Source: Perkinsus chesapeaki ATCC PRA-425 (taxonomy: Eukaryota > Protista > Perkinsozoa). Taken from it: a stretch of 39,738 nt of DNA. The stretch spans positions 1 through 39,738 of the forward strand of contig JAAPAO010000321.1 in the NCBI GenBank assembly GCA_013115145.1, read 5' to 3'. A program made the position numbers and the translations under genes. Position 1 is the stretch's first letter. Each line of letters starts with the position of its first letter. Under the pieces are notes generated by a model, which was not told the origin of the DNA, did not search any database, and was given only the letters and a program-made list of their open reading frames with translations. Positions 22,720 through 39,738 of the stretch are shown piece by piece.

Positions 22720-24529
22720 ATGCCATCAACTTCGAAAACTCTTTGTCTAACAGCTGCCAAGGGAACTCCAGTGGAGGTCCTTGAAGCATTGAAGCATCTT
22801 TCTAGTGCAGAGCTCATCGCTCGACCATATGCCTTTGGGAAGGCGCTGGGAACCGTAAGGCTTCCTTCACCTGTTCGACCGTTATGATTGTCAAAATTCA
22901 TCCGGCCTTGCTCGAGGCTCGAATGGCGTTAGTAGGTCGGAAAACATTCACTCAGTGAAATTCTAACTGTTGCTCCTTCATTCCATCTGCCTTACAAGCA
23001 CCTTTAGTGAAATGTTTAATCCATCGCTGTGGCTTAGGGAGTAGATGCCACTACCAGCCTCAGAACCGCATCTTAAGACATTTTACGGAAATACTCCTGA
23101 GTCCACCGTCAGTCCTTATAGTGTTATTCCTGGTGTACAGGTATCATACCGAAGTCGGCTCTCCTGGCGCCCCCTCGGCCAGGCATTTTTCAGCATTATC
23201 GGTTCAATCGAATGCAAGAAGTTGCCTGTGGACTTCCTTCAAGGCTTTATCGATGCAAGTGGCCCGGCTGGTCTTGTAAAGATAATCTCCGACGTAAGTC
23301 CGCAGCTGGATTCTCATACCGTATTTCCCTCCGATCAGCACCACATCTACTCCCCCCTCCGCCCACTTGCCCTCGACTGGCTCCTCTTCCACCCAGTATT
23401 CATTGAAAGCCTCTCACTGCCGGACAAGCAATCTCTGCTACGACAGTCGGAGGTTCTCTCTGCATTTCGAAGCAACACTAAGTTCTTCTCTTTGGTCATG
23501 TCGCATCATTTCAATGGCATCACGATGCCCCTACAGACGGTCGATAGCGCTATCATGCGTCTGAAGCCCTCGAGCGGCTTGGTATCTTTGGTTCACCTCC
23601 TGCTCCTGCGCGCTCGAAGGCTGTCATGGCCGGCAGAGTTGCCTGCGAACGCTTTGGTACTTCTTTCGAGGCACGCCGAAGAGCACGGTGGAGTGTGGCT
23701 GTCATTCCTGCTTGGAACTTGGAGATACCGTAAAGTCGATTCAGGTTTGCTATGGAAGGCCTGTCGCCATTTCCACGAGTACAAGGCGAAGCTGTGGTCT
23801 CATGGTGAGGCTGCTGACAGTGTGGCTGCTGAACTGGTCGGACGAACTGACGATGATATCCTCAACGGGCTCTATCGGTGCATGGTTAGGGTAGCCTCGC
23901 AGGAGCATGAGTGTCCAGGACAAGGAGAGCGGATTGGTATCATCAGTGTTATTTTGAACTCGACCGCGGCACGCGATGACAACTTCGCCGAGGTTTGTGA
24001 GTTAATTGGCAACGGACACTGTGAATGGCTCAGAGATGCTGTAAGGGACCATCCTTGCATTGAAAGGATTCTAGCGGATGAGCTCAAAGCCATCGAATTG
24101 ATCCACCGCGTCGGTCTTAGGCAAGAAGTGCTAGCGTTCGGCACGGAAGCAATCGTGCATGCGTACAGACAAACGCATTGGGCATTCCTGCGCTCTTTAC
24201 TGCTCAGCCATCCACTACAGGTTCTTGCAAAGTTGACTCCTCTACGAGTTCTCGGCCGCCCGATTGATCGGGATTTCCGTTTGGAGTTCTTGCGGGCAAT
24301 GAAAGCCTCGCCGGGCTTGTGGGATCCGTATGTGGTTAATGAACTCAGCGAAGATGAGGCAACCTGTGAGTCGGAATCTGAGCTTGAAGCGTGCATTCAG
24401 AAGTCAAGGTCGAGAGTGCCATTTATCGTATCTTCCCCAGCACAAGATGCTGAGCTGCTGGAATCGGCCGACTTCCGTCGTTTGGTTAGGATTATCAATG
24501 AGAATGCCATGAGAGCTTTGCGACAATAA
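22720..24529 (+). CDS. Hypothetical alpha-helical protein; main exon 23045-24529, putative first exon 22720-22854
   Basis: 494-codon ORF. The upstream ATG exon MPSTSKTLCL...KALGT ends at GTAAGG. No recognisable motif. Confidence 0.6.
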
Positions 24530-29402: not shown

Positions 29403-29938
29403 GGCTTAGCCTCCAAGCTCGGCTCGTCGAGAGCAATACTTCGAACGCTTCGCGTTCAAGTGGCCTGTACTTGACAGGCCCTTCAAAGTGCTATCGTTCT
29501 TCATAATAGGTAGCAGAGACTTTATTGTTCGGAAAGGAAGTAGTTGATCGTAACCTTCTTTTCGTCCTTACCACCACTTACTTGGTCAATTAGAATTGGG
29601 GCTATTTAACTGAGGGGGACAAATGCTATTACCAGCTGTCTATTTAGTAGTCTACATTTATCATTCAGATTTCCCGCCAAGTCTACCCCCGCCTGAGGAC
29701 GATTCTGTGCCAAACAAGCGACGTTCGACTCTGGTGAATATCGTTCCTCGACACCAAGGAAGGTGCCCACAAGCAGATTCCGACAGCGTTGAGATGGATG
29801 CAGGAACAAATCTATCTCAGCAGGTCCACTGTTATGTGAGGACTAAGATGCCATCTCCACGAAAGATAGACGGATAGCACAATAAAGAAATACGTTCTGT
29901 CGCAGAATCTTACGAATTACGGGAGTGGTTCCTAACGT

Positions 29939-30346
29939 ACTACTACCCCAGTGATTGATACTACTACACCAGTGATTGATACTACTACCCCAGTGATTGA
30001 TACTACAACCCCAGTGATTGATACTACTACCCCAGTGATTGATACTACTACCCCAGTGATTGATACTACTACCCCAGTGATTGATACTACTACCCCAGTG
30101 AANNNNNNNNNNNNNNNNNNNNNNNNNNNNNNNNNNNNNNNNNNNNNNNNNNNNNNNNNNNNNNNNNNNNNNNNNNNNNNNNNNNNNNNNNNNNNNNNNG
30201 ATTGATACTACAACCCCAGTGATTGATACTACAACCCCAGTGATAACTACTCATGTAACTGATACTTCATCTTTCTGCAGATGAGTGTTCTGGCTCGTAC
30301 AACAACATCGGTTTGTTGGGGAAGCACAAAACCTTGTTCATGTTAA
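29939..30346 (+). pseudogene. Orphan copy of the oxidase tail: 21-bp DTTTPVI array spanning a gap, followed by a frameshifted Cys module
   Basis: Same repeat unit and same ITTHVTDT exit as 26782-26970. GSY and SVCWGSTKPCSC* lie in different frames. There is an in-frame TAA just upstream of the array. Confidence 0.55.
30103..30199. other. Assembly gap (97 N) inside the tandem array
   Basis: N run. Confidence 1.
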
Positions 30347-32093: not shown

Positions 32094-34503
32094 ATGATGC
32101 CGGGGTTGCGTAAACGTTCTGACGAGATGTTAAGCAGAGATAAAGGCGGGCAGTTGATCATTGAGATTGTAGGGAAGGATACGGTACAGGTAGTGGGGAT
32201 AGAACCGGGGACCTTTAGGATAAGATAATTTGGCAGGTCCGCAAACCAGTTGGGAAAACGGACATATCGGATGCTGCTAATAAGGATGTCGCCGTGGTGC
32301 CTGTCAGCGAATTCAACAGGTATCTTAGGTTAACGGTGCAAGATTCGGAATAGGTCGTCTTGTGCGCGTTGCGCATATTGTAATGAAATATAGTGATGTT
32401 CAGGCTGAAGGAAGGCTCAACGATGACGGAGAAAGAGAGGGAAATCGCTAGGCGTCGCCAAGCTCGAGAGGAAGTATCTTATCTCGAATCACGCATGATA
32501 CGCACCAGCTAACCTTGCTTAGTACGAAGAGAGAATGCAGAAGTCGAAAGACCGCAAAGAGAAGATGGTAAAAATGGAGGAGGAAAGGAAAAGGAATGCA
32601 TTGAGAAGCACGAACGAAGTTAACGAGAGGGCCGCCCGAAATTCAGTAATATCCCAGACGGATGGCTTCTCCCAGTTTCAACCCATTACACTTAAAACAC
32701 TCTTCCCAATCGATTTCAGGTACTCCAACGGGCTCGGAATAAATTAGATGAGGAAATGGACGATGTGAAACATATGAATCAGATGATGCTCTACTCCAAA
32801 GTGGCTACCATCAGGGATGCTCAAGTCCAGGAAAAAAGGTACCGACTTGGACAATTGCGAAGTTTGATGAGGTTTGGTAGGTATATGCACGCCGAGAGAG
32901 AGGAGGAAGAGCAACAATTAGATGCTATGGCAGAGATAGAGAGGCTTAAGGCCTTGCAAATGTACTATAATGGAGGCTTTGGGATTCGAACCAGGGTCGT
33001 TTGGATGGAAGGTATGAGGAACGCAATCGAAAGCGGGCGGTTGACCAACGCCGTGGAGCGTCTGTTATTGTGGAGCAAATTAAGGATCGTCAACAGGCTA
33101 AATTGAGGGAGGTGATGGCCTTATCAAAGCTCAGGGCTGTTGAGGTATGGATTTAGGAAGAACAAAGGGACCGTGAGAGGCAGTTTATATTGAAGCAGAT
33201 TGAAGCTTTGAAGGATGAGGAGGTTCGATAAGATGAGGCTCACGTGAATGAGAAACTGTAAATGTCAGGTTGCGCAGCAAATATCGAAGAAAGAAGCCGC
33301 GGCCAAGCTGGTGAAGGAAGTTAATTTGTCGAACGCAGCTGCATTGAAAAGTGATAATATATTGACGTTAGCCGGGATCGAACTTGGGCGGTTCAGTCAA
33401 GGAAGAGAGGTTGATGGCTGATAAATTGGAAGATCAGAAGATAATAGAATATCAAAGGAAAAGGGAACAACAAGAGAAGGCTAGAGAGGAGCAGCTCGCG
33501 GTAATGTATTTTAGGCTAATAGGGAAGCATGTTGGACTCGCATCCGAAAGGTCGCTGGTTCGATGCTAACGGGTCGCTTTTTATCAGGCCGAGGCTGCTG
33601 CTAAGGAAGCAGAGTTCGCCAGACTTCGTGCTCAACAACAGCGTGCTCAGGACAAGGCAGCCGATATGGATGCATTGAGAGCAAAGAGAGCGATTGAGGC
33701 AGCTGAGCGACAAGTAGGCAAAAGAGGATTGGTTTATAGGGGCGGGGGTCATAGAGGAAACTCGCCGAATGTGATATAGAGGAATATGCTACAGCGTCGG
33801 TAGGAGCAAGTTTTATATTATATCTCCGCCTGCACACTGAGCTAGTTGTGTATTAAAGCTTTCTCGGTCTATGGTTACTGCATCAGGCACGACAGAAAGA
33901 GCTGAATGAAGCAAGAAGGCTGGAAGCTATCAATGAGGAACTAGCCGAGGCGAGGAGACAGCAAGAGGAGGAGAAGGAGAGGCGCTTAGCAGAGCAAGCA
34001 ATGTAATGTACTGTGCTGTACTATCGGTGGTGGATTATTTTAAGTCAGGTTGGAGAGAGAGGAATTTGAAAGAATAGTTTTGGTACAAATGCAACAAGAG
34101 GAGGCTGAGAGGGTCAGGGCAGATGAAGAGAAACAACAGAGGTTAAATCACTGTGAAGAGCTGAAGAAACAGATACAGGTAAGAAGGAGATCTTGCAATC
34201 TTGAAGTTCCTTAACGCTTTGACTAGGCCCGGGAGGAGGCCACTCTGCAAGCCCGCCGTGACTTTTTGGAGGAGGGCAATGTGATACGAGCTCAAATAGC
34301 AGCTGAGAGGAGGAAGTTGGCATCTATTAAGCAGAAGAAGATCGAGCAACTGAAGGCTGCAGGAGTACCTGAAAAGTAGGTTAACTGGTTATGATGTTGG
34401 TTTGACATTCTGGAGGTTCTTGGTTCGAATCTATGGTCGGTGTTTTATTTGTTTTTCCATCAGATATTGGGCGGAGCTTGGCAAAATGAAGCTATCTGTG
34501 TAG
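32094..34503 (+). CDS. CFAP45: Cilia- and flagella-associated protein 45 (CCDC19), about 14 exons; 5' end tentative
   Basis: In-frame exons give LDEEMDDVKHMNQMMLYSKVATIRDAQVQEK, QQLDAMAEIERLKA, DKAADMDALRAKRAIEAAER, EREEFERI, FLEEG and IKQKKIEQLKAAGVPEK/YW, collinear with CFAP45 motifs. Confidence 0.88.
33501..33587 (+). repeat. Intron resembling a degenerate full-length tRNA (sense)
   Basis: TAGGCTAATAGGGAAGC (A-box-like), TTGGA-CTCGCA-TCCGA hairpin, AAGGTC GCTGGTTCGATG (B-box-like). Confidence 0.6.
34376..34463 (+). repeat. Intron resembling a degenerate full-length tRNA (sense), beginning at the GT donor
   Basis: GTAGGTTAACTGGTTATGATG resembles GTAGCTCAACTGGTTAGAGCG; then GAGGTTCTTGGTTCGAATC. 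Confidence 0.6.
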
Positions 34504-34636
34504 AGATACTTCACCAGCATGTGCATGATGAAACCCTCCTCATCCCCGTTGCCCCACTAGTCGTCGTCTTATGATACTCCTACTTGTTGTTGCGTTGGTT
34601 GAGTCCCGTCTAGATTGAGCTCTCAGAATTCATGAG

Positions 34637-35188
34637 ATGGAGTGTCTTTCTGTCGTTATACTAATCTTCAGCGGTATCTTCGCCCTGGCAATTCTGGTTA
34701 CCCTGATCGTGTTTATTTTTTCCAGACGCTCAGTCTGCTCATTTCCCGGAAGAGCATCGGCGTCAAGGAGACCAAGGGAAGTCGGTCTCACTGGCAACAA
34801 TATTTCATCAATCACGGTTTGTTCAGAATCATCATACGACTCATCAGCTGGCAACCGATGACTTCTCTCGGCGGCCTAATAGTATTATATTTGATTTTGC
34901 CACTCATACATCATACGACCTGACACGAGCTGGCGGTAGCTTCAAAAAGGAGGTCCACCCAGTAGAGTATGGAGCACATGAGGTACCACGGAGATCCATA
35001 GAAGATGTTGGCGACAGTCGGCCACAGGCAGGGGTAAGCCGGCTCTTATTGCGTTATTCTGAATGTGTGTCATTTAGGAACTGCCGGAGAGTCTTTCTGG
35101 CTCATTAGCTGATGGCTCTGGTGATGGTAGCGATAAGACCGAAGTCTACATCGACCCATCTGCTGACCGTTTCAACAAATTATCGTGA
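34637..35188 (+). CDS. Small single-pass membrane protein (tentative 3-exon model)
   Basis: N-terminal TM VVILIFSGIFALAILVTLIVFIF then RR. The last exon after GTAAGC...TTAG reads ELPESLSG...RFNKLS*. Confidence 0.45.
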
Positions 35189-35762
35189 TGCCTTTGGCAG
35201 ATTGTCGTTTATAACCAATCTCACTCGATGAGGAAGTATATTCTGTTTGGTTCAACAGGAGTGTCTTGAAGCAGTGCTTCGGAAAGATCACCATACGAGC
35301 GTTTCAGGGCAGAACTTTCCAGTATAACTATCAAAAGGTCGTTCTCAACACCTATGCGAAACCGAAATGAGTGTTCATTTTAACCCACTCCTGTCAACAA
35401 GGGATACGCGAAAGAGAACGTCGGCTACAACTGAACTCTGTACGCGCGCATAGGAACATCCTCGGTTCAGGAGTTACTGCTAGTGGCGACATTCGCTGAA
35501 TCTTCTAGCACACAATTATATTGCTACGGATAAACTAGAATACTCGACACTACCATTTTCGAAATGGGGGGTATTTCACACCGCGACAGACAAGTGCGTT
35601 GTCAACAGTCACCCTGCAGCTACGTGAACAAGCGGAGCCACATAGCGTTCTGGTACCCTGTATCATAATGAGCAGATGAGGAGTGAGGCATCTATACTAA
35701 CGCTAGTTTTCGAAGAGCCCTCGGAGAGCAAGCACGATACCACCTTTTACATTATATTGGTC

Positions 35763-36347
35763 TTAGGAGAGTGCGGGTATGTACGGTGGTCGAGATAGAC
35801 GATCGAGATAATTTGGGGTCCAGAGGATGATAATCTTGTCCGATTTTTGGAGATAATCAGACAACTTCCAAGTCCCTCGTGCCTTCGCTGCATGACTAGT
35901 TTGATCTATACAACACTTGTCGAGAAAGACTGTAGTGTTGCGATGTTGATATAGTGAAAATAAAAGTGTAGAGATTACAAATGTTAATAACCCGAGTATC
36001 ATAACGGCATTTCTGTACCAGAAAGATTTATGGAAACGATACAGTGTGAGGCATACCCCTAGTAGAGACAACAACACCGTAGTTTTATACGCTATAGGCG
36101 GACTGCAACATAATAGAAGGGCGACTTGCTTCCAGCAACCGCTATCGCACCATGCGTGGCTCAAGAAAATGTCGAGCGAGCAGACTGGAGCTGACATACT
36201 GTGGGCAGCAATAGGGTCATCAGAGCTCCGAAGTAGAGACCGATTACATTGTAGATTGATAGCAGCCTCGCATAGACTTTTCCGACTGGGATGCACTCGC
36301 CACCTCTGAATTGGCACTTCATCGTTACGTAGGCAACGGAAAGACAT
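35763..36347 (-). pseudogene. Truncated paralog of the TM-TIR gene (194 aa; ends after YLDRL)
   Basis: About 96% identical to 38545-38998 by my count. Homology stops at 35795, immediately before WCVYEL. ATG 36347 (the track's 36356 start is TTG). Confidence 0.75.
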
Positions 36348-36510
36348 GCGAGCCAAAGAGTAGCGCCTGTGATAAAAGAATCATTTATCCACAATAATAT
36401 CTCGGTTTTCTGAGTGACCCGATTTCATCCATTAGACTCAAGACGTTCTTCTCGAAGAACGGAGAGCAATCTCCTCCGAGACTCCTAGAACGGTACTACA
36501 ACTGTACCCA

Positions 36511-36591
36511 CCCGGAGCTTCCGGGCGGAGCAGAGTCACCGACCCCTCCTCGTCTCCAATACAAGCCAGTAATACTAGCCTAATATACGCG
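36511..36591. promoter_or_regulatory. Upstream motifs conserved between the TIR paralogs (CCCGGAGCTTCCGGG ... TAATATACGCG)
   Basis: Counterparts at 39377-39391 and 39425-39435, in otherwise diverged DNA. Confidence 0.45.
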
Positions 36592-37612
36592 ATAACACCG
36601 TTCCTCAGAAGTTCGGGCACATGCGGAGAAACTCTGATGCTCAGGAGCACTATGCTCAACAATTTCATAGTATTGTTATTTGTTTTTCTAAGACGCTTTC
36701 ATTGGCTCCTTTATTCTCTCGAGTTCCCCAGAACGTGCCTGTAATGTACTCTAAGCTATGTGGCTTAGTGGTATGCCTTCCCTCGCTTCCCGTAATGGGT
36801 TCTACATACTCAGCTCTGAACGGTGATAATGCTTCTCTGAATGAGCGGATAGAGTCAATAGCTCCAATCATTCGGCGAGATCGCCGCCAACAAGCGTTTA
36901 TGTACATCGGTCAGGCAGGCTGACACAGCCTGCACCGGTAAGCTACAGTAAAAGAAGCCCCTCGGGACTGTTGAAGCAGCGTTGTCTACAAGTGTCGCTA
37001 GAAGAGGTGCCCAGTGAGCATTGCTCAGCACCAGATATTATGGAGTTTAGTATTTCAGGTGACAGAAAGTTACCCTTCGGAACAGCTTCACAGTATGAGC
37101 ACGATATTTCCCAGTGCGAGACTCCCACTGCAAGTGAATGTATTAGCTTGAAACTTTGAGAGCAGGATTCAGTCTGTGACTCACGGTTGGTAATGAGTCA
37201 TGACTTTTCATGGGCTTGAGCGCGCAGTCTTTAAAGTATCGTGCTTCAAGTATCGTTTGATTGATGTTAGGAATCCTAGTTCGGACATACTGAACGGTTC
37301 TGACATGCTGCATTGCGTAGTCGCGGCTTTTGAGCTTTTGACGGTGCAAGATATACATAAAGTGAGTGAAGATATCGTATAATACCGGGAAGTGAATATA
37401 TGAACCTATTTATCAATACTTTCATATAACAAAACTCTGACACTTTTGAAAAGTTACGGAAATATGCTGCGAGACACCATATGGGAGTCAAGGCAGAATG
37501 GTGCTAGTCTATTCGACCATTAATAATAGGTTTCTGCTGAGCTCGGTGTAGCTAGTTTCCCATCTGAGAGGTCGTTGTTAGCCTCAACCCATGGGGTATG
37601 GCCCTTCGAGAG

Positions 37613-39097
37613 TTAAGATATAATACTAGGTAACTGATGAGAATAGAGCCATTTGGATACAGACCAAACAAAACCTAGCTCGGTCAACCCGGCCAAAAGC
37701 AACGAACCTTCATACCATAATCCTCCTTGCGGATCTTCATAAAACGGTCCATGGAATAAACCTAGGCCGCAAGTGAACTGGGACAAGCTTGTGAGTATAA
37801 TAAATGCGAAGGCATAAAGGATACCCAGGAGCAAATGACCGCGTGGCTGAAGCTTCTTCCCCGCCAGCTTATGGACAAAGAGCAACATCAGCGGAACTTG
37901 AAAAGAACGTATGAGCACAGGTAGGAGTCGCGTACGAATTGCCCATGGGAAGGTCGCTGAAGCACACGGGAATTCCGGAGCTGACCCGATTGAGGCAATA
38001 TTCGCCATTGGCCTTTCCCACTCCGTGAACATAACCAGTAGTGCTGAGGCAGCACCATAAGCTATACTGGGTACAAATGAGGCTGACATGATCCTCAATG
38101 ACGTCGGAGATAAGAACCACATTGGTGCGTGTTCCTCCGTCCCTCTCCCGACGCAGAGACGTTTCACCACTGCAGCAAAGTTGGCCTCCGAACCATACAT
38201 TCGGCGGATGAGCTTCGTCAGCTTCTTATGGTCTTCACGCGATGTACATTTGGCGCGTCTCAGACTGAAAGACTTCACCTTCGACGCAAAAGTTGTCCAT
38301 TCGTCGAAGCAGCGATACGCTTGACGGCCCACCAGTATATAGGCGGTCAGATCACCAAGGACACTGCAAAACATAAAAGTACCAGATTCGCGGTCAATAT
38401 TAAATATGCGTATCCACTGGATGAACATTTCGAGTAGATGAAATACCAATAGAGATACACATAGCTTCACGTGACCAAGATTAACTACGATGACATCCTC
38501 CTTGTCGTGAGTTTGCATAAAGACAGCTAACTCGTAAACACACCATAGACGATCGAGATAATTTGGGGTCCAAAGGATGATAATCTTGTCCGATTTTTGG
38601 AGATAATCGGACAATCTCCAAATCCCTCGAGCCTTCGCTGCATAATTAGTTTGATCTATACAACACTTGTCGAGAAAGACTGTAGTGTTGCGATGTTGAT
38701 GTAGTGAAAATAAAAGTGTAGAGATTACAAATGTTAATAACCCGAGTATCATAACGGCATTTCTGTACCAGAAGGATTGACGGAAACGATACAGTGTAAG
38801 GCATACCCCTAGTAGAGACAACAACACCGTTGTTTTATACGCGATAGGCGGACTGCAACATAATAGAAGGGCGACTTGCTTCCAGCATCCGCTATCGCAC
38901 CATGCGTGGCTCAAGAAAATGTCGAGCGAGCAGACTGGAGCTGACATACTGTGGGCAGCAATAGGGTCATCAGAGCTCCGAAGTAGAGACCGATTACATA
39001 GTAGTGTAGATAAAGAGCAGCCTCGCAGAGGCTCCTCCGGTCGAGATGCACTTGCCACTTCCTCGTTATGGCGTGAATGTAGGCAACGAGAAGACAT
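37613..39097 (-). CDS. Polytopic membrane protein with a TM-interrupted TIR-like domain, intronless
   Basis: DIFLSHAW (betaA), two TM helices, VFLDKCCIDQ (betaB), SDKIIILWTPNYLDRLWCVYEL (betaC/alphaC with the Glu), then several further TM segments. Confidence 0.8.
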   Translation of the reverse strand: MSSRCLHSRHNEEVASASRPEEPLRGCSLSTLLCNRSLLRSSDDPIAAHSMSAPVCSLDIFLSHAWCDSGCWKQVALLLCCSPPIAYKTTVLLSLLGVCLTLYRFRQSFWYRNAVMILGLLTFVISTLLFSLHQHRNTTVFLDKCCIDQTNYAAKARGIWRLSDYLQKSDKIIILWTPNYLDRLWCVYELAVFMQTHDKEDVIVVNLGHVKLCVSLLVFHLLEMFIQWIRIFNIDRESGTFMFCSVLGDLTAYILVGRQAYRCFDEWTTFASKVKSFSLRRAKCTSREDHKKLTKLIRRMYGSEANFAAVVKRLCVGRGTEEHAPMWFLSPTSLRIMSASFVPSIAYGAASALLVMFTEWERPMANIASIGSAPEFPCASATFPWAIRTRLLPVLIRSFQVPLMLLFVHKLAGKKLQPRGHLLLGILYAFAFIILTSLSQFTCGLGLFHGPFYEDPQGGLWYEGSLLLAGLTELGFVWSVSKWLYSHQLPSIIS

Positions 39098-39738
39098 GCA
39101 AGACAAAGAGTAGCGCCTGCGATGAACGAATCACTTGTCAACAATAAACGAGACGAATATCTCGGTTCCCTAAGTGGACCTATCTGGATTTGAGGGGTTT
39201 TTCTCAAAGCTAAACCCTCTACCATACGACTCATTTGGAGGCCAAATATCGGAGAAGGGAAAACTAAAATGTTCGCCTACATCTAGATGATGCGGATGAC
39301 CTTCGCGCGTCACCTTGGCTGTCTCTTTTCTTGTCACGTGGAGCACCCTGCTCCGAGACCCATGAACATGTAGCCACCCGGAACTTCCGGGCAGGAAATA
39401 GAGCGACGCGCCGCTCTTCGGCTGTAATATACGCGTATCATATTATATGAATACATTGTCACAAGAGGCAGCTTAGTTCTCGCAGTAGTAGACAAATATT
39501 GAGCGGGATTCCGCTCGAGCCGGGCTATGGTCACGGCTATTTAGTATGCTCGCGCTGCTGTAGGTTCTGCTTGGGATTCTCAGGTGGGAGTAAATACATA
39601 TTCTCACGGAAAACGGTAAATCGTTACGGAACAGTCTCGCTCGCCCTAATCTATTCTCTGCGCGCACTTTCGGTTAATTCTCACGGAAACCCTGTAATGG
39701 TCCCCTGTTGCATCGGGTTTCTGGTTTACCTTTATAAC

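Follow-up and report, generated by a model that had tools for sequence, protein, structure and literature searches.

A TIR gene of Perkinsus chesapeaki predicted to be split by membrane helices, and a probable pseudogene fragment of its 5' end

Introduction

Catalytic TIR domains, such as those of SARM1, the plant proteins RUN1, RPP1 and ROQ1, AbTir, Thoeris ThsB and the SPARTA protein TIR-APAZ, are contiguous. In the TLR/IL-1R family and in Dictyostelium TirC the TIR domain is held at the membrane by one helix, which lies outside the intact domain. TirC is a TIR NADase with an N-terminal membrane helix and represents an active, membrane-tethered TIR in a protist (PMC13142454). In this study, we analysed one whole contig of 39,738 bp (C2417, hereafter the window) from the draft genome (41.7 Mb in 3544 contigs) of Perkinsus chesapeaki, a protist parasite of clams and oysters. 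On its minus strand the window carries a 494-codon gene for a predicted membrane protein with a TIR domain and a 194-codon open reading frame (ORF) related to the 5' end of that gene. Unlike those of the catalytic TIRs, the domain of the long protein appears not to be contiguous: a hairpin of ~65 residues follows betaA, another of ~75 residues follows betaD, and four more helices follow the domain. As in the TLR/IL-1R family and TirC, the TIR would be held at the membrane; however, the helices would be inside the domain, and no ectodomain is evident.

In the gene clusters of plant NLRs, truncated paralogues and pseudogene fragments lie beside intact genes of an expanding tandem family, as they do here. 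A true TIR decoy and negative regulator is MyD88s, and to our knowledge the TIR negative regulators keep the whole TIR domain. In contrast, the short ORF of the window ends inside the domain and its N-terminus is frameshifted. Here we propose that the short ORF is probably a pseudogene fragment that arose by partial duplication of the long gene and was kept similar to it by gene conversion. UniRef already labels Perkinsus members of this family as TIR proteins. No literature on Perkinsus TIR proteins or on TIR domains split by membrane helices was found (subscription journals lay outside the search), and we found no description of the split-membrane architecture.

Results and Discussion

The two ORFs

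The ORF list and tblastn confirm both ORFs as described in a first-pass annotation made from the sequence alone, which had also correctly placed the DNA in a protist. The long ORF runs from ATG 39097 to the stop codon at 37613-37615 and encodes 494 aa, and the short ORF runs from ATG 36347 to the stop codon at 35763-35765 and encodes 194 aa. Neither has an intron, and 2,750 bp lie between the two start codons. Counted from TTG, the long ORF is 37613..39106 (497 aa) and the short ORF is 35763..36356 (197 aa). The spacer between the copies is 1.26 kb long and single-copy, and both flanks are unique in the genome, including the stretch 34600-35800 at the short copy. Features of the locus and of related fragments are collected in Table 1.

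Table 1. Features of the TIR locus in the window and fragments of the same family elsewhere in the genome
Feature	Position	Strand	Evidence
Long gene, predicted eight-pass membrane protein with split TIR	37613..39097	-	ORF, hydropathy, AlphaFold2, cDNA-type contigs, family profile
TIR segment 1, betaA DIFLSHAW, residues 54-69	38891..38938	-	Alignment A2; model strand E58-64; TIR structure matches
TIR segment 2, residues 139-206: betaB VFLDKCCI, alphaB, betaC IIILW, alphaC RLWCVYELA, betaD	38480..38683	-	
E189 (GAG codon), position of the catalytic residue of TIR NADases	38531..38533	-	Paralogue alignment, direct reading, PDB profile
TIR segment 3, residues 280-338, helices closing the fold after the second hairpin	38084..38260	-	TIR matches, conserved columns
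Probable spliced-leader acceptor of the long gene	39104..39118	-	Contig end of run X2, sequence reading
Short ORF, 194 codons + TAA, partial copy of the long gene's 5' end, probable pseudogene fragment	35763..36347	-	
455-nt block, 96.5% identical to 38545-38999 (codons 34-184)	35795..36249	-	DNA alignment
Codons 7-33 of the short ORF, out of frame, LRGxSL lost	36250..36329	-	DNA alignment, alignment A2, reading frames
Unrelated tail SRPPYIPALS + stop	35763..35794	-	Direct reading
Upstream homologous stretch, matches 39098-39215, about 76% identity with indels, includes AG acceptor	36348..36460	-	
Family debris: N-terminal piece, profile 1-220, Glu kept	C3300		
Family debris: C-terminal piece, profile 241-462	C2183		
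Family debris: C-terminal piece, profile 205-455	C498		
Family debris: 350-aa open frame, Glu-less, in-frame deletion of profile 159-358	C309:65942-66700 (locus L038:1179-2232)	+	
Family debris: copy split across two frames	C1654		
Family debris: copies interrupted by stop codons	C781 (two), C1631, C1566		
Family debris: small pieces	C1424, C1348, C3430		

The TIR domain of the long protein is predicted to be split by membrane helices

The long ORF (494 codons and TAA) matches the family profile at positions 1-463. Hydropathy places its eight hydrophobic segments at about residues 75-103, 108-135, 200-234, 238-258, 336-359, 389-413, 416-450 and 466-484. The stretch from betaA to betaB holds two of the membrane helices, a second pair comes after betaD, and the last four follow the third TIR piece. 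Since the number of helices in each insertion is even, the three TIR pieces should lie on one side of the membrane.

Conservation within the family follows the same three pieces. In an alignment of 29 full-length paralogues from the P. chesapeaki genome (A2), which was also the input for AlphaFold2, the first island is DxFLSHSW, with F61, S63, H64 and W66 invariant. The second is VFLDKCCIxQ...ILW...RLWCVFELA, with F141, D143, I147, W176, W185, C186 and E189 invariant, and the third is AxCT..D...YGS..F, seen in TIR segment 3 as the motif AxCT...D...YGS...F with conserved columns C284, D289, G302 and F307. The AlphaFold2 model of the long protein (predicted local distance difference test score, pLDDT, 79; predicted TM-score, pTM, 0.79) has a flavodoxin-like alpha/beta fold with parallel strands from betaA to betaD/E. 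When this model was searched with Foldseek, plant TIR domains and BcThsB ranked first, with weak E-values (0.1-1), and the TIR matches of VIA-align start at model residues 54-57 and reach residues 333-341. A TIR fold is thus predicted across the membrane insertions. The first-pass annotation had proposed a TIR core interrupted by a transmembrane (TM) hairpin, and the prediction supports this, with two hairpins, one after betaA and one after betaD.

In Pfam, TIR_2 matches the long protein at residues 145-232 with an E-value of 4.9e-5 (24.2 bits, below the cutoff of 28), and TIR matches within the same residues with 19.8 bits (cutoff 21.3). The match is limited to this region because the insertions break the profile. 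Some paralogues pass the cutoff; PF01582 or PF13676 is precomputed for P0005, P0006 and P0011. When the family profile was compared with PDB sequences, the alphaC motif aligned best with IL1RAPL and TLR2, where WCvFEl aligns with WCKYEL of TLR2 and with the FEL motif of IL1RAPL. Because these aligned sequences also have the Glu, this residue, though necessary for catalysis, is not diagnostic of it. The predictions (Pfam, alignment A2, AlphaFold2, Foldseek and the PDB profile) therefore support what had been proposed, a protein that crosses the membrane several times and retains the alphaC Glu at the catalytic position of a TIR fold built from its cytosolic pieces; the NADase activity and the signalling or immune role proposed with it are putative.

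The long gene is an ordinary member of its family. Two proteins named 'TIR domain-containing protein' in UniRef, FOL47_010170 of P. chesapeaki and FOZ61_001629 of P. olseni, have the length of the long protein and are 53% and 42% identical to it over 94-100% of its residues. The FOL47_ locus tags of nearly identical database paralogues place the genome in P. chesapeaki. Clusters of 104-154 eukaryotic members in the ESM Atlas resemble the whole architecture (TM-score 0.73-0.77 over 444-453 residues), and their few labelled members are haptophytes.

Two database entries of this family have unusual gene models. P0001, a 301-aa product from this contig (37616-38518, minus strand), starts at the internal Met194 (MQTHDKED...), and this gene call leaves out betaA to alphaC, including the Glu. 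The match between the family and P0018 of P. olseni (681 aa), annotated as mRNA-capping enzyme subunit beta (PF02940), spans 49% of the query; two adjacent genes have probably been fused in this gene model.

The short copy breaks off in front of the alphaC motif

By DNA alignment and direct reading, both copies share ...AAT TAT CTC GAT CGT CTA T. After these bases the long copy reads GG TGT GTT TAC GAG TTA (WCVYEL), and the short copy reads CT CGA CCA CCG ... TAA, which gives 10 unrelated codons and a stop. Homology thus ends one base past codon L184, right before W185-C186-x-x-E189. No ordered trace of residues 185-494 was found downstream of 35795 when the long protein was searched against the whole window by tblastn with E-values up to 100; therefore the cut is real and is not an intron. 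For the same reason we rejected a hidden C-terminal exon or intron at the break, and a transposon at this point was rejected because each flank of the short copy occurs only once in the genome.

The short ORF keeps betaA (DIFLSHAW), one membrane hairpin (two hydrophobic helices), betaB (VFLDKCCI), alphaB and betaC (IIILW), and it lacks alphaC, betaD, the third TIR piece and six membrane helices. The first-pass annotation was therefore right that the short copy keeps these strands and helices, is cut before the alphaC Glu and has lost it together with the later TMs (alignment, tblastn and direct reading). It had further stressed that the cut falls exactly before the Glu. The position is correct; its significance did not hold up. 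Because any break before residue 189, which is 38% of the gene, loses the Glu, 'exactly' is a post hoc description, and other fragments of the family break elsewhere.

The junction at 35782-35807 (minus strand) reads TATCTCGATCGTC TATCTCGACCACC. The first 5 nt past the homology (CTCGA) repeat a motif 13 nt upstream (TATCTCGA...TATCTCGA), for which we estimate a chance of about 1 in 1000. The repeat may be a scar that slippage or template switching left during the duplication.

Mosaic identity and a frameshifted N-terminus in the short copy

The duplicate is ~665 bp long; it starts about 110 nt before the ATG and ends one base beyond codon 184. In the 455-nt block, 439 of the 455 bases are identical without a gap, and the 16 substitutions are divided into nine synonymous and seven non-synonymous ones; the shared part is 95% identical in protein. 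Each copy is the closest relative of the other. Since the remaining paralogues have at most 71% DNA identity and the best P. olseni protein is 42% identical to the long protein, the pair is young and species-specific.

Upstream of the block the copies differ far more. Here 34 mismatches and 10 gap positions occur in 153 columns, compared with 16 differences in the 455 positions of the block (Fisher p = 5e-12), and this upstream divergence is far above the dS of 0.09 in the block. Homology fades gradually beyond 36460 on the 5' side. Because it extends upstream of the acceptor AG for spliced leader (SL) trans-splicing, the duplication took place at the DNA level, and an origin as a retrocopy was rejected. 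The mosaic identity is most simply explained if the duplication is older and gene conversion homogenised its core at a later time. A 109-nt run of 100% identity within the block is not claimed as a younger conversion tract, its chance being about 0.2 given 16 differences in 455.

Part of the N-terminal coding sequence of the short ORF is out of frame. Compared with the long copy and the family, the short copy has two compensating 5-nt indels, between which codons 7-33 are shifted. When the short copy is read in frame 2, it still yields SEVASASQSEKSMRGCYQST, the equivalent of EEVASASRPEEPLRGCSLST in the long copy (long residues 12-31). The LRG motif lost in this way is a confident strand in the long model (E24-28, pLDDT about 91), and its G26 is nearly invariant in the 29 paralogues. 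Accordingly, the claim that the short copy has no internal frameshift holds for the ORF, which is open, and fails for these codons. The family profile matches the short copy at positions 32-179 only. An AlphaFold2 model of the short copy has a pLDDT of 78, carried by the family alignment, and residues 1-5 and 8-23 are below 50. In a complex prediction of the long and short proteins the score was 0.00, which counts neither for nor against binding.

Only the long gene is covered by cDNA-type contigs

Expression data were two small public runs of one study, X1 and X2, used as assembled contigs. They were taken as cDNA-type because of a 44-nt GT..AG joint and a contig end that bears the SL. Contigs of both runs cover the coding sequence of the long gene at 37616-38861 with 100% identity, and the long gene is transcribed. 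In contrast, no cDNA-type contig of the two small runs lies on the spacer, the short copy or its unique tail (35158-37527), which gives a weak hint that the short copy is silent. Expression data had been suggested earlier as a check, and contigs were found on the long copy alone.

A loose end of one X2 contig reads AGCCATCTTGGCTCAAG+GCGCTACTCTTTG. Of this, the first 17 nt correspond to the 3' end of the SL of Perkinsus, which is ACCGTAGCCATCTTGGCTCAAG (PMC3101222). In the long gene the acceptor AG at 39118-39117 is followed by GCGCTACTCTTTG, the first 13 nt of a 19-nt 5' untranslated region (UTR) that ends at ATG 39097. This points to SL trans-splicing at 39117/39116. The 13-mer is found in front of the ATG of the short copy as well, so the origin of the SL-bearing end is ambiguous.

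The junction of this SL-bearing end with position 38830 looks like a k-mer chimera; base 38831 differs between the copies. The 44-nt GT..AG intron is skipped by an X2 contig at 35032-35077 (plus strand), near the 3' end of the convergent neighbour gene.

Fragments of the family elsewhere in the genome

A search of the genome with the family profile gave 46 hits. About 30 of these are intact genes that encode 425-550 aa, and most of them stand in tandem arrays, on C309, C3300, C2117, C1631, C14, C299, C3247 and other contigs. About 14 others are fragments or stop-riddled copies with differing breakpoints (Table 1). The 350-aa ORF on C309 joins profile positions 10-158 to 359-452, so that betaC, the Glu helix, the second hairpin and the third TIR piece are removed. 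Since no two fragments break at the same place, a cut before WCxxE is not a recurrent designed feature. A genome-wide count of similarly truncated copies, proposed as a check in the first-pass annotation, thus found no second copy with this breakpoint.

A protein of the short copy's form was also sought outside this genome. None was found in a collection of 5.8 billion proteins (word search, candidates of 107-340 aa), none is among the Perkinsus UniRef paralogues listed, and none is among the P. olseni family proteins, where the short entries start at MVFLDKCCI and keep WCVYEL. Exact look-ups of P0001, the short protein and the long protein returned no record, which is uninformative because the resource behind these look-ups may omit this genome.

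The short ORF as a probable pseudogene fragment

Taken together, the absence of residues 185-494, the shift of codons 7-33 and the similar debris elsewhere make it likely that the short ORF is a pseudogene fragment. A DNA duplication of ~665 bp would have taken no more than the 5' portion of the long gene and placed it beside single-copy DNA of unrelated sequence. Decay would then have affected the older part of the copy, where indels shifted codons 7-33. Later, the 455-nt core may have been re-homogenised by gene conversion with the live gene, and may for this reason still be open. Because the block is 96.5% identical to a live gene, an open frame is expected and is little evidence of function, and a stop after 10 codons, as in the tail, is nothing unusual in random sequence. 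Under half of the predicted TIR fold would be present in the short product, which therefore probably lacks a function of its own. Both the gene conversion and this lack of function are inferences.

Substitutions in the block are few. The pairwise dN/dS is 0.22 (7 non-synonymous to 9 synonymous; the numbers are small). The changes were polarised with five outgroup paralogues, which gave about 5 non-synonymous to 2 synonymous changes in the short lineage (omega about 0.7), among them I159T, which alters a site that the family conserves, and about 3 to 4 in the long lineage (omega about 0.2). As far as such small numbers allow, and short of significance, this split leans to relaxed constraint on the short copy.

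Several observations weigh against the short ORF being a pseudogene fragment. The dN/dS of 0.22 rejects neutrality of both copies together (p = 0.004), and neither constraint on the long copy only (P = 0.07) nor constraint on both copies (P = 0.08) is rejected. In the relative-rate test with the same outgroups, the derived nucleotide changes are equal, seven in each lineage, and no acceleration of the short copy is detectable. From the homologous ATG onwards the short ORF has 194 codons without a stop, the AG acceptor and the 5' UTR are retained, and we estimate the chance that two indels restore the phase without a stop between them at about 10%. As for expression, contigs show presence and not absence, rare variants are dropped in assembly, and the runs likely represent one culture condition. 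Moreover, contigs of both runs end exactly at 37616, the last sense base, and cover neither the stop codon nor the 3' UTR; this is unexplained.

The first-pass annotation had proposed that the short ORF is a linked dominant-negative or decoy partner. If it were translated, a Glu-less half-TIR would join oligomers of the long paralogue through the hairpin and the betaA-betaC surface, and would block or tune their assembly. The open frame and the retained SL acceptor speak for such a role, as do the high protein identity, by which self-contacts in the shared part would be common to both, and the low pairwise dN/dS; the C309 ORF is a second Glu-less, in-frame ORF of the family. However, the conserved N-terminal strand motif is lost by frameshift, and with three sheet strands left and alphaC absent an independent fold is doubtful. 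In ESMFold the pLDDT of the short partner was below 50 in at least one run, and the confidence of AlphaFold2 comes from the family alignment. The short copy has neither a cDNA contig nor a conserved counterpart, breakpoints do not recur among the fragments, and the short lineage has changed a conserved site (I159T). We found no sign that the truncated form has been maintained by selection or conserved in relatives. The decoy proposal was therefore not upheld, and we regard such a role as unlikely. In its most specific form, the short product would be SL-capped and translated under a condition such as host contact or stress and would cap the oligomers of the long paralogue, as a brake on a membrane TIR system for signalling or cell death, which we consider just as unlikely; the Glu-less copy on C309 could act in the same way for its own array.

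A role of the fragment as DNA is somewhat less likely still. Here the fragment would matter as a donor or acceptor of gene conversion that varies the N-terminal half of a fast-evolving receptor family. The mosaic identity (a block of 96.5% against about 76% upstream) and the tandem arrays with their many fragments fit this idea. On the other hand, there is only one conversion-like tract, which could have run in either direction, the 16 differences are a small number and largely conservative, and neighbouring repeats convert without any selected role.

Finally, it is very improbable that the short copy is an assembly artefact, in which a second haplotype or paralogue was misjoined in a draft polyploid assembly: the assembly is fragmented, the contig reaches only 640 bp beyond the 5' end of the long gene and Ns mark a gap at about 30100-30200, but the single-copy spacer and the unique flanks, the gradual fading of the 5' homology, and 16 substitutions together with indels, more than a pasted-in allele would show, all argue against it.

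The family with a predicted split TIR domain

As an intact gene with a probable pseudogene fragment beside it, the pair represents the ordinary birth-and-death debris of a tandem family, and the census of fragments shows that this family turns over fast. The case also warns that a clean break in front of a catalytic residue and a reading frame free of stops are not enough to call a fragment a decoy.

The family is more interesting than the pair, since it has about 30 tandem copies in Perkinsus of a TIR domain that is predicted to be threaded twice through the membrane, and whole-protein look-alikes in clusters from other marine protists. In the long protein, three loops on one membrane side (residues 54-69, 139-206 and about 280-338) would assemble as one TIR domain, with one membrane hairpin inserted after betaA and a second after betaD. 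By analogy with other TIR proteins, the molecules may cluster in the plane of the membrane so that their TIR domains pair. E189 might then cleave NAD+, or the assembly might serve as a scaffold, and the outcome in the cell could be signalling or cell death. If NAD+ is cleaved, the family would provide a new way to couple TIR chemistry to the membrane. In that case it would also be a candidate system for self-defence or cell death in this parasite, whose hosts are commercial shellfish.

Other features of the window

Scans of the window for tRNAs and Rfam families gave no match. A 21-nt tandem repeat of 7.8 copies at 29938-30251 encodes TTPVID repeats and abuts the run of Ns. ORFs at 32535-33106, in the region of the neighbour gene that is convergent with the TIR pair, encode a Glu/Lys-rich coiled coil. 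An ORF at 23045-24529 (plus strand) also has 494 codons; it has no match to the family profile and no Pfam family at E-values up to 0.01, and it has the length of the long TIR gene by coincidence.

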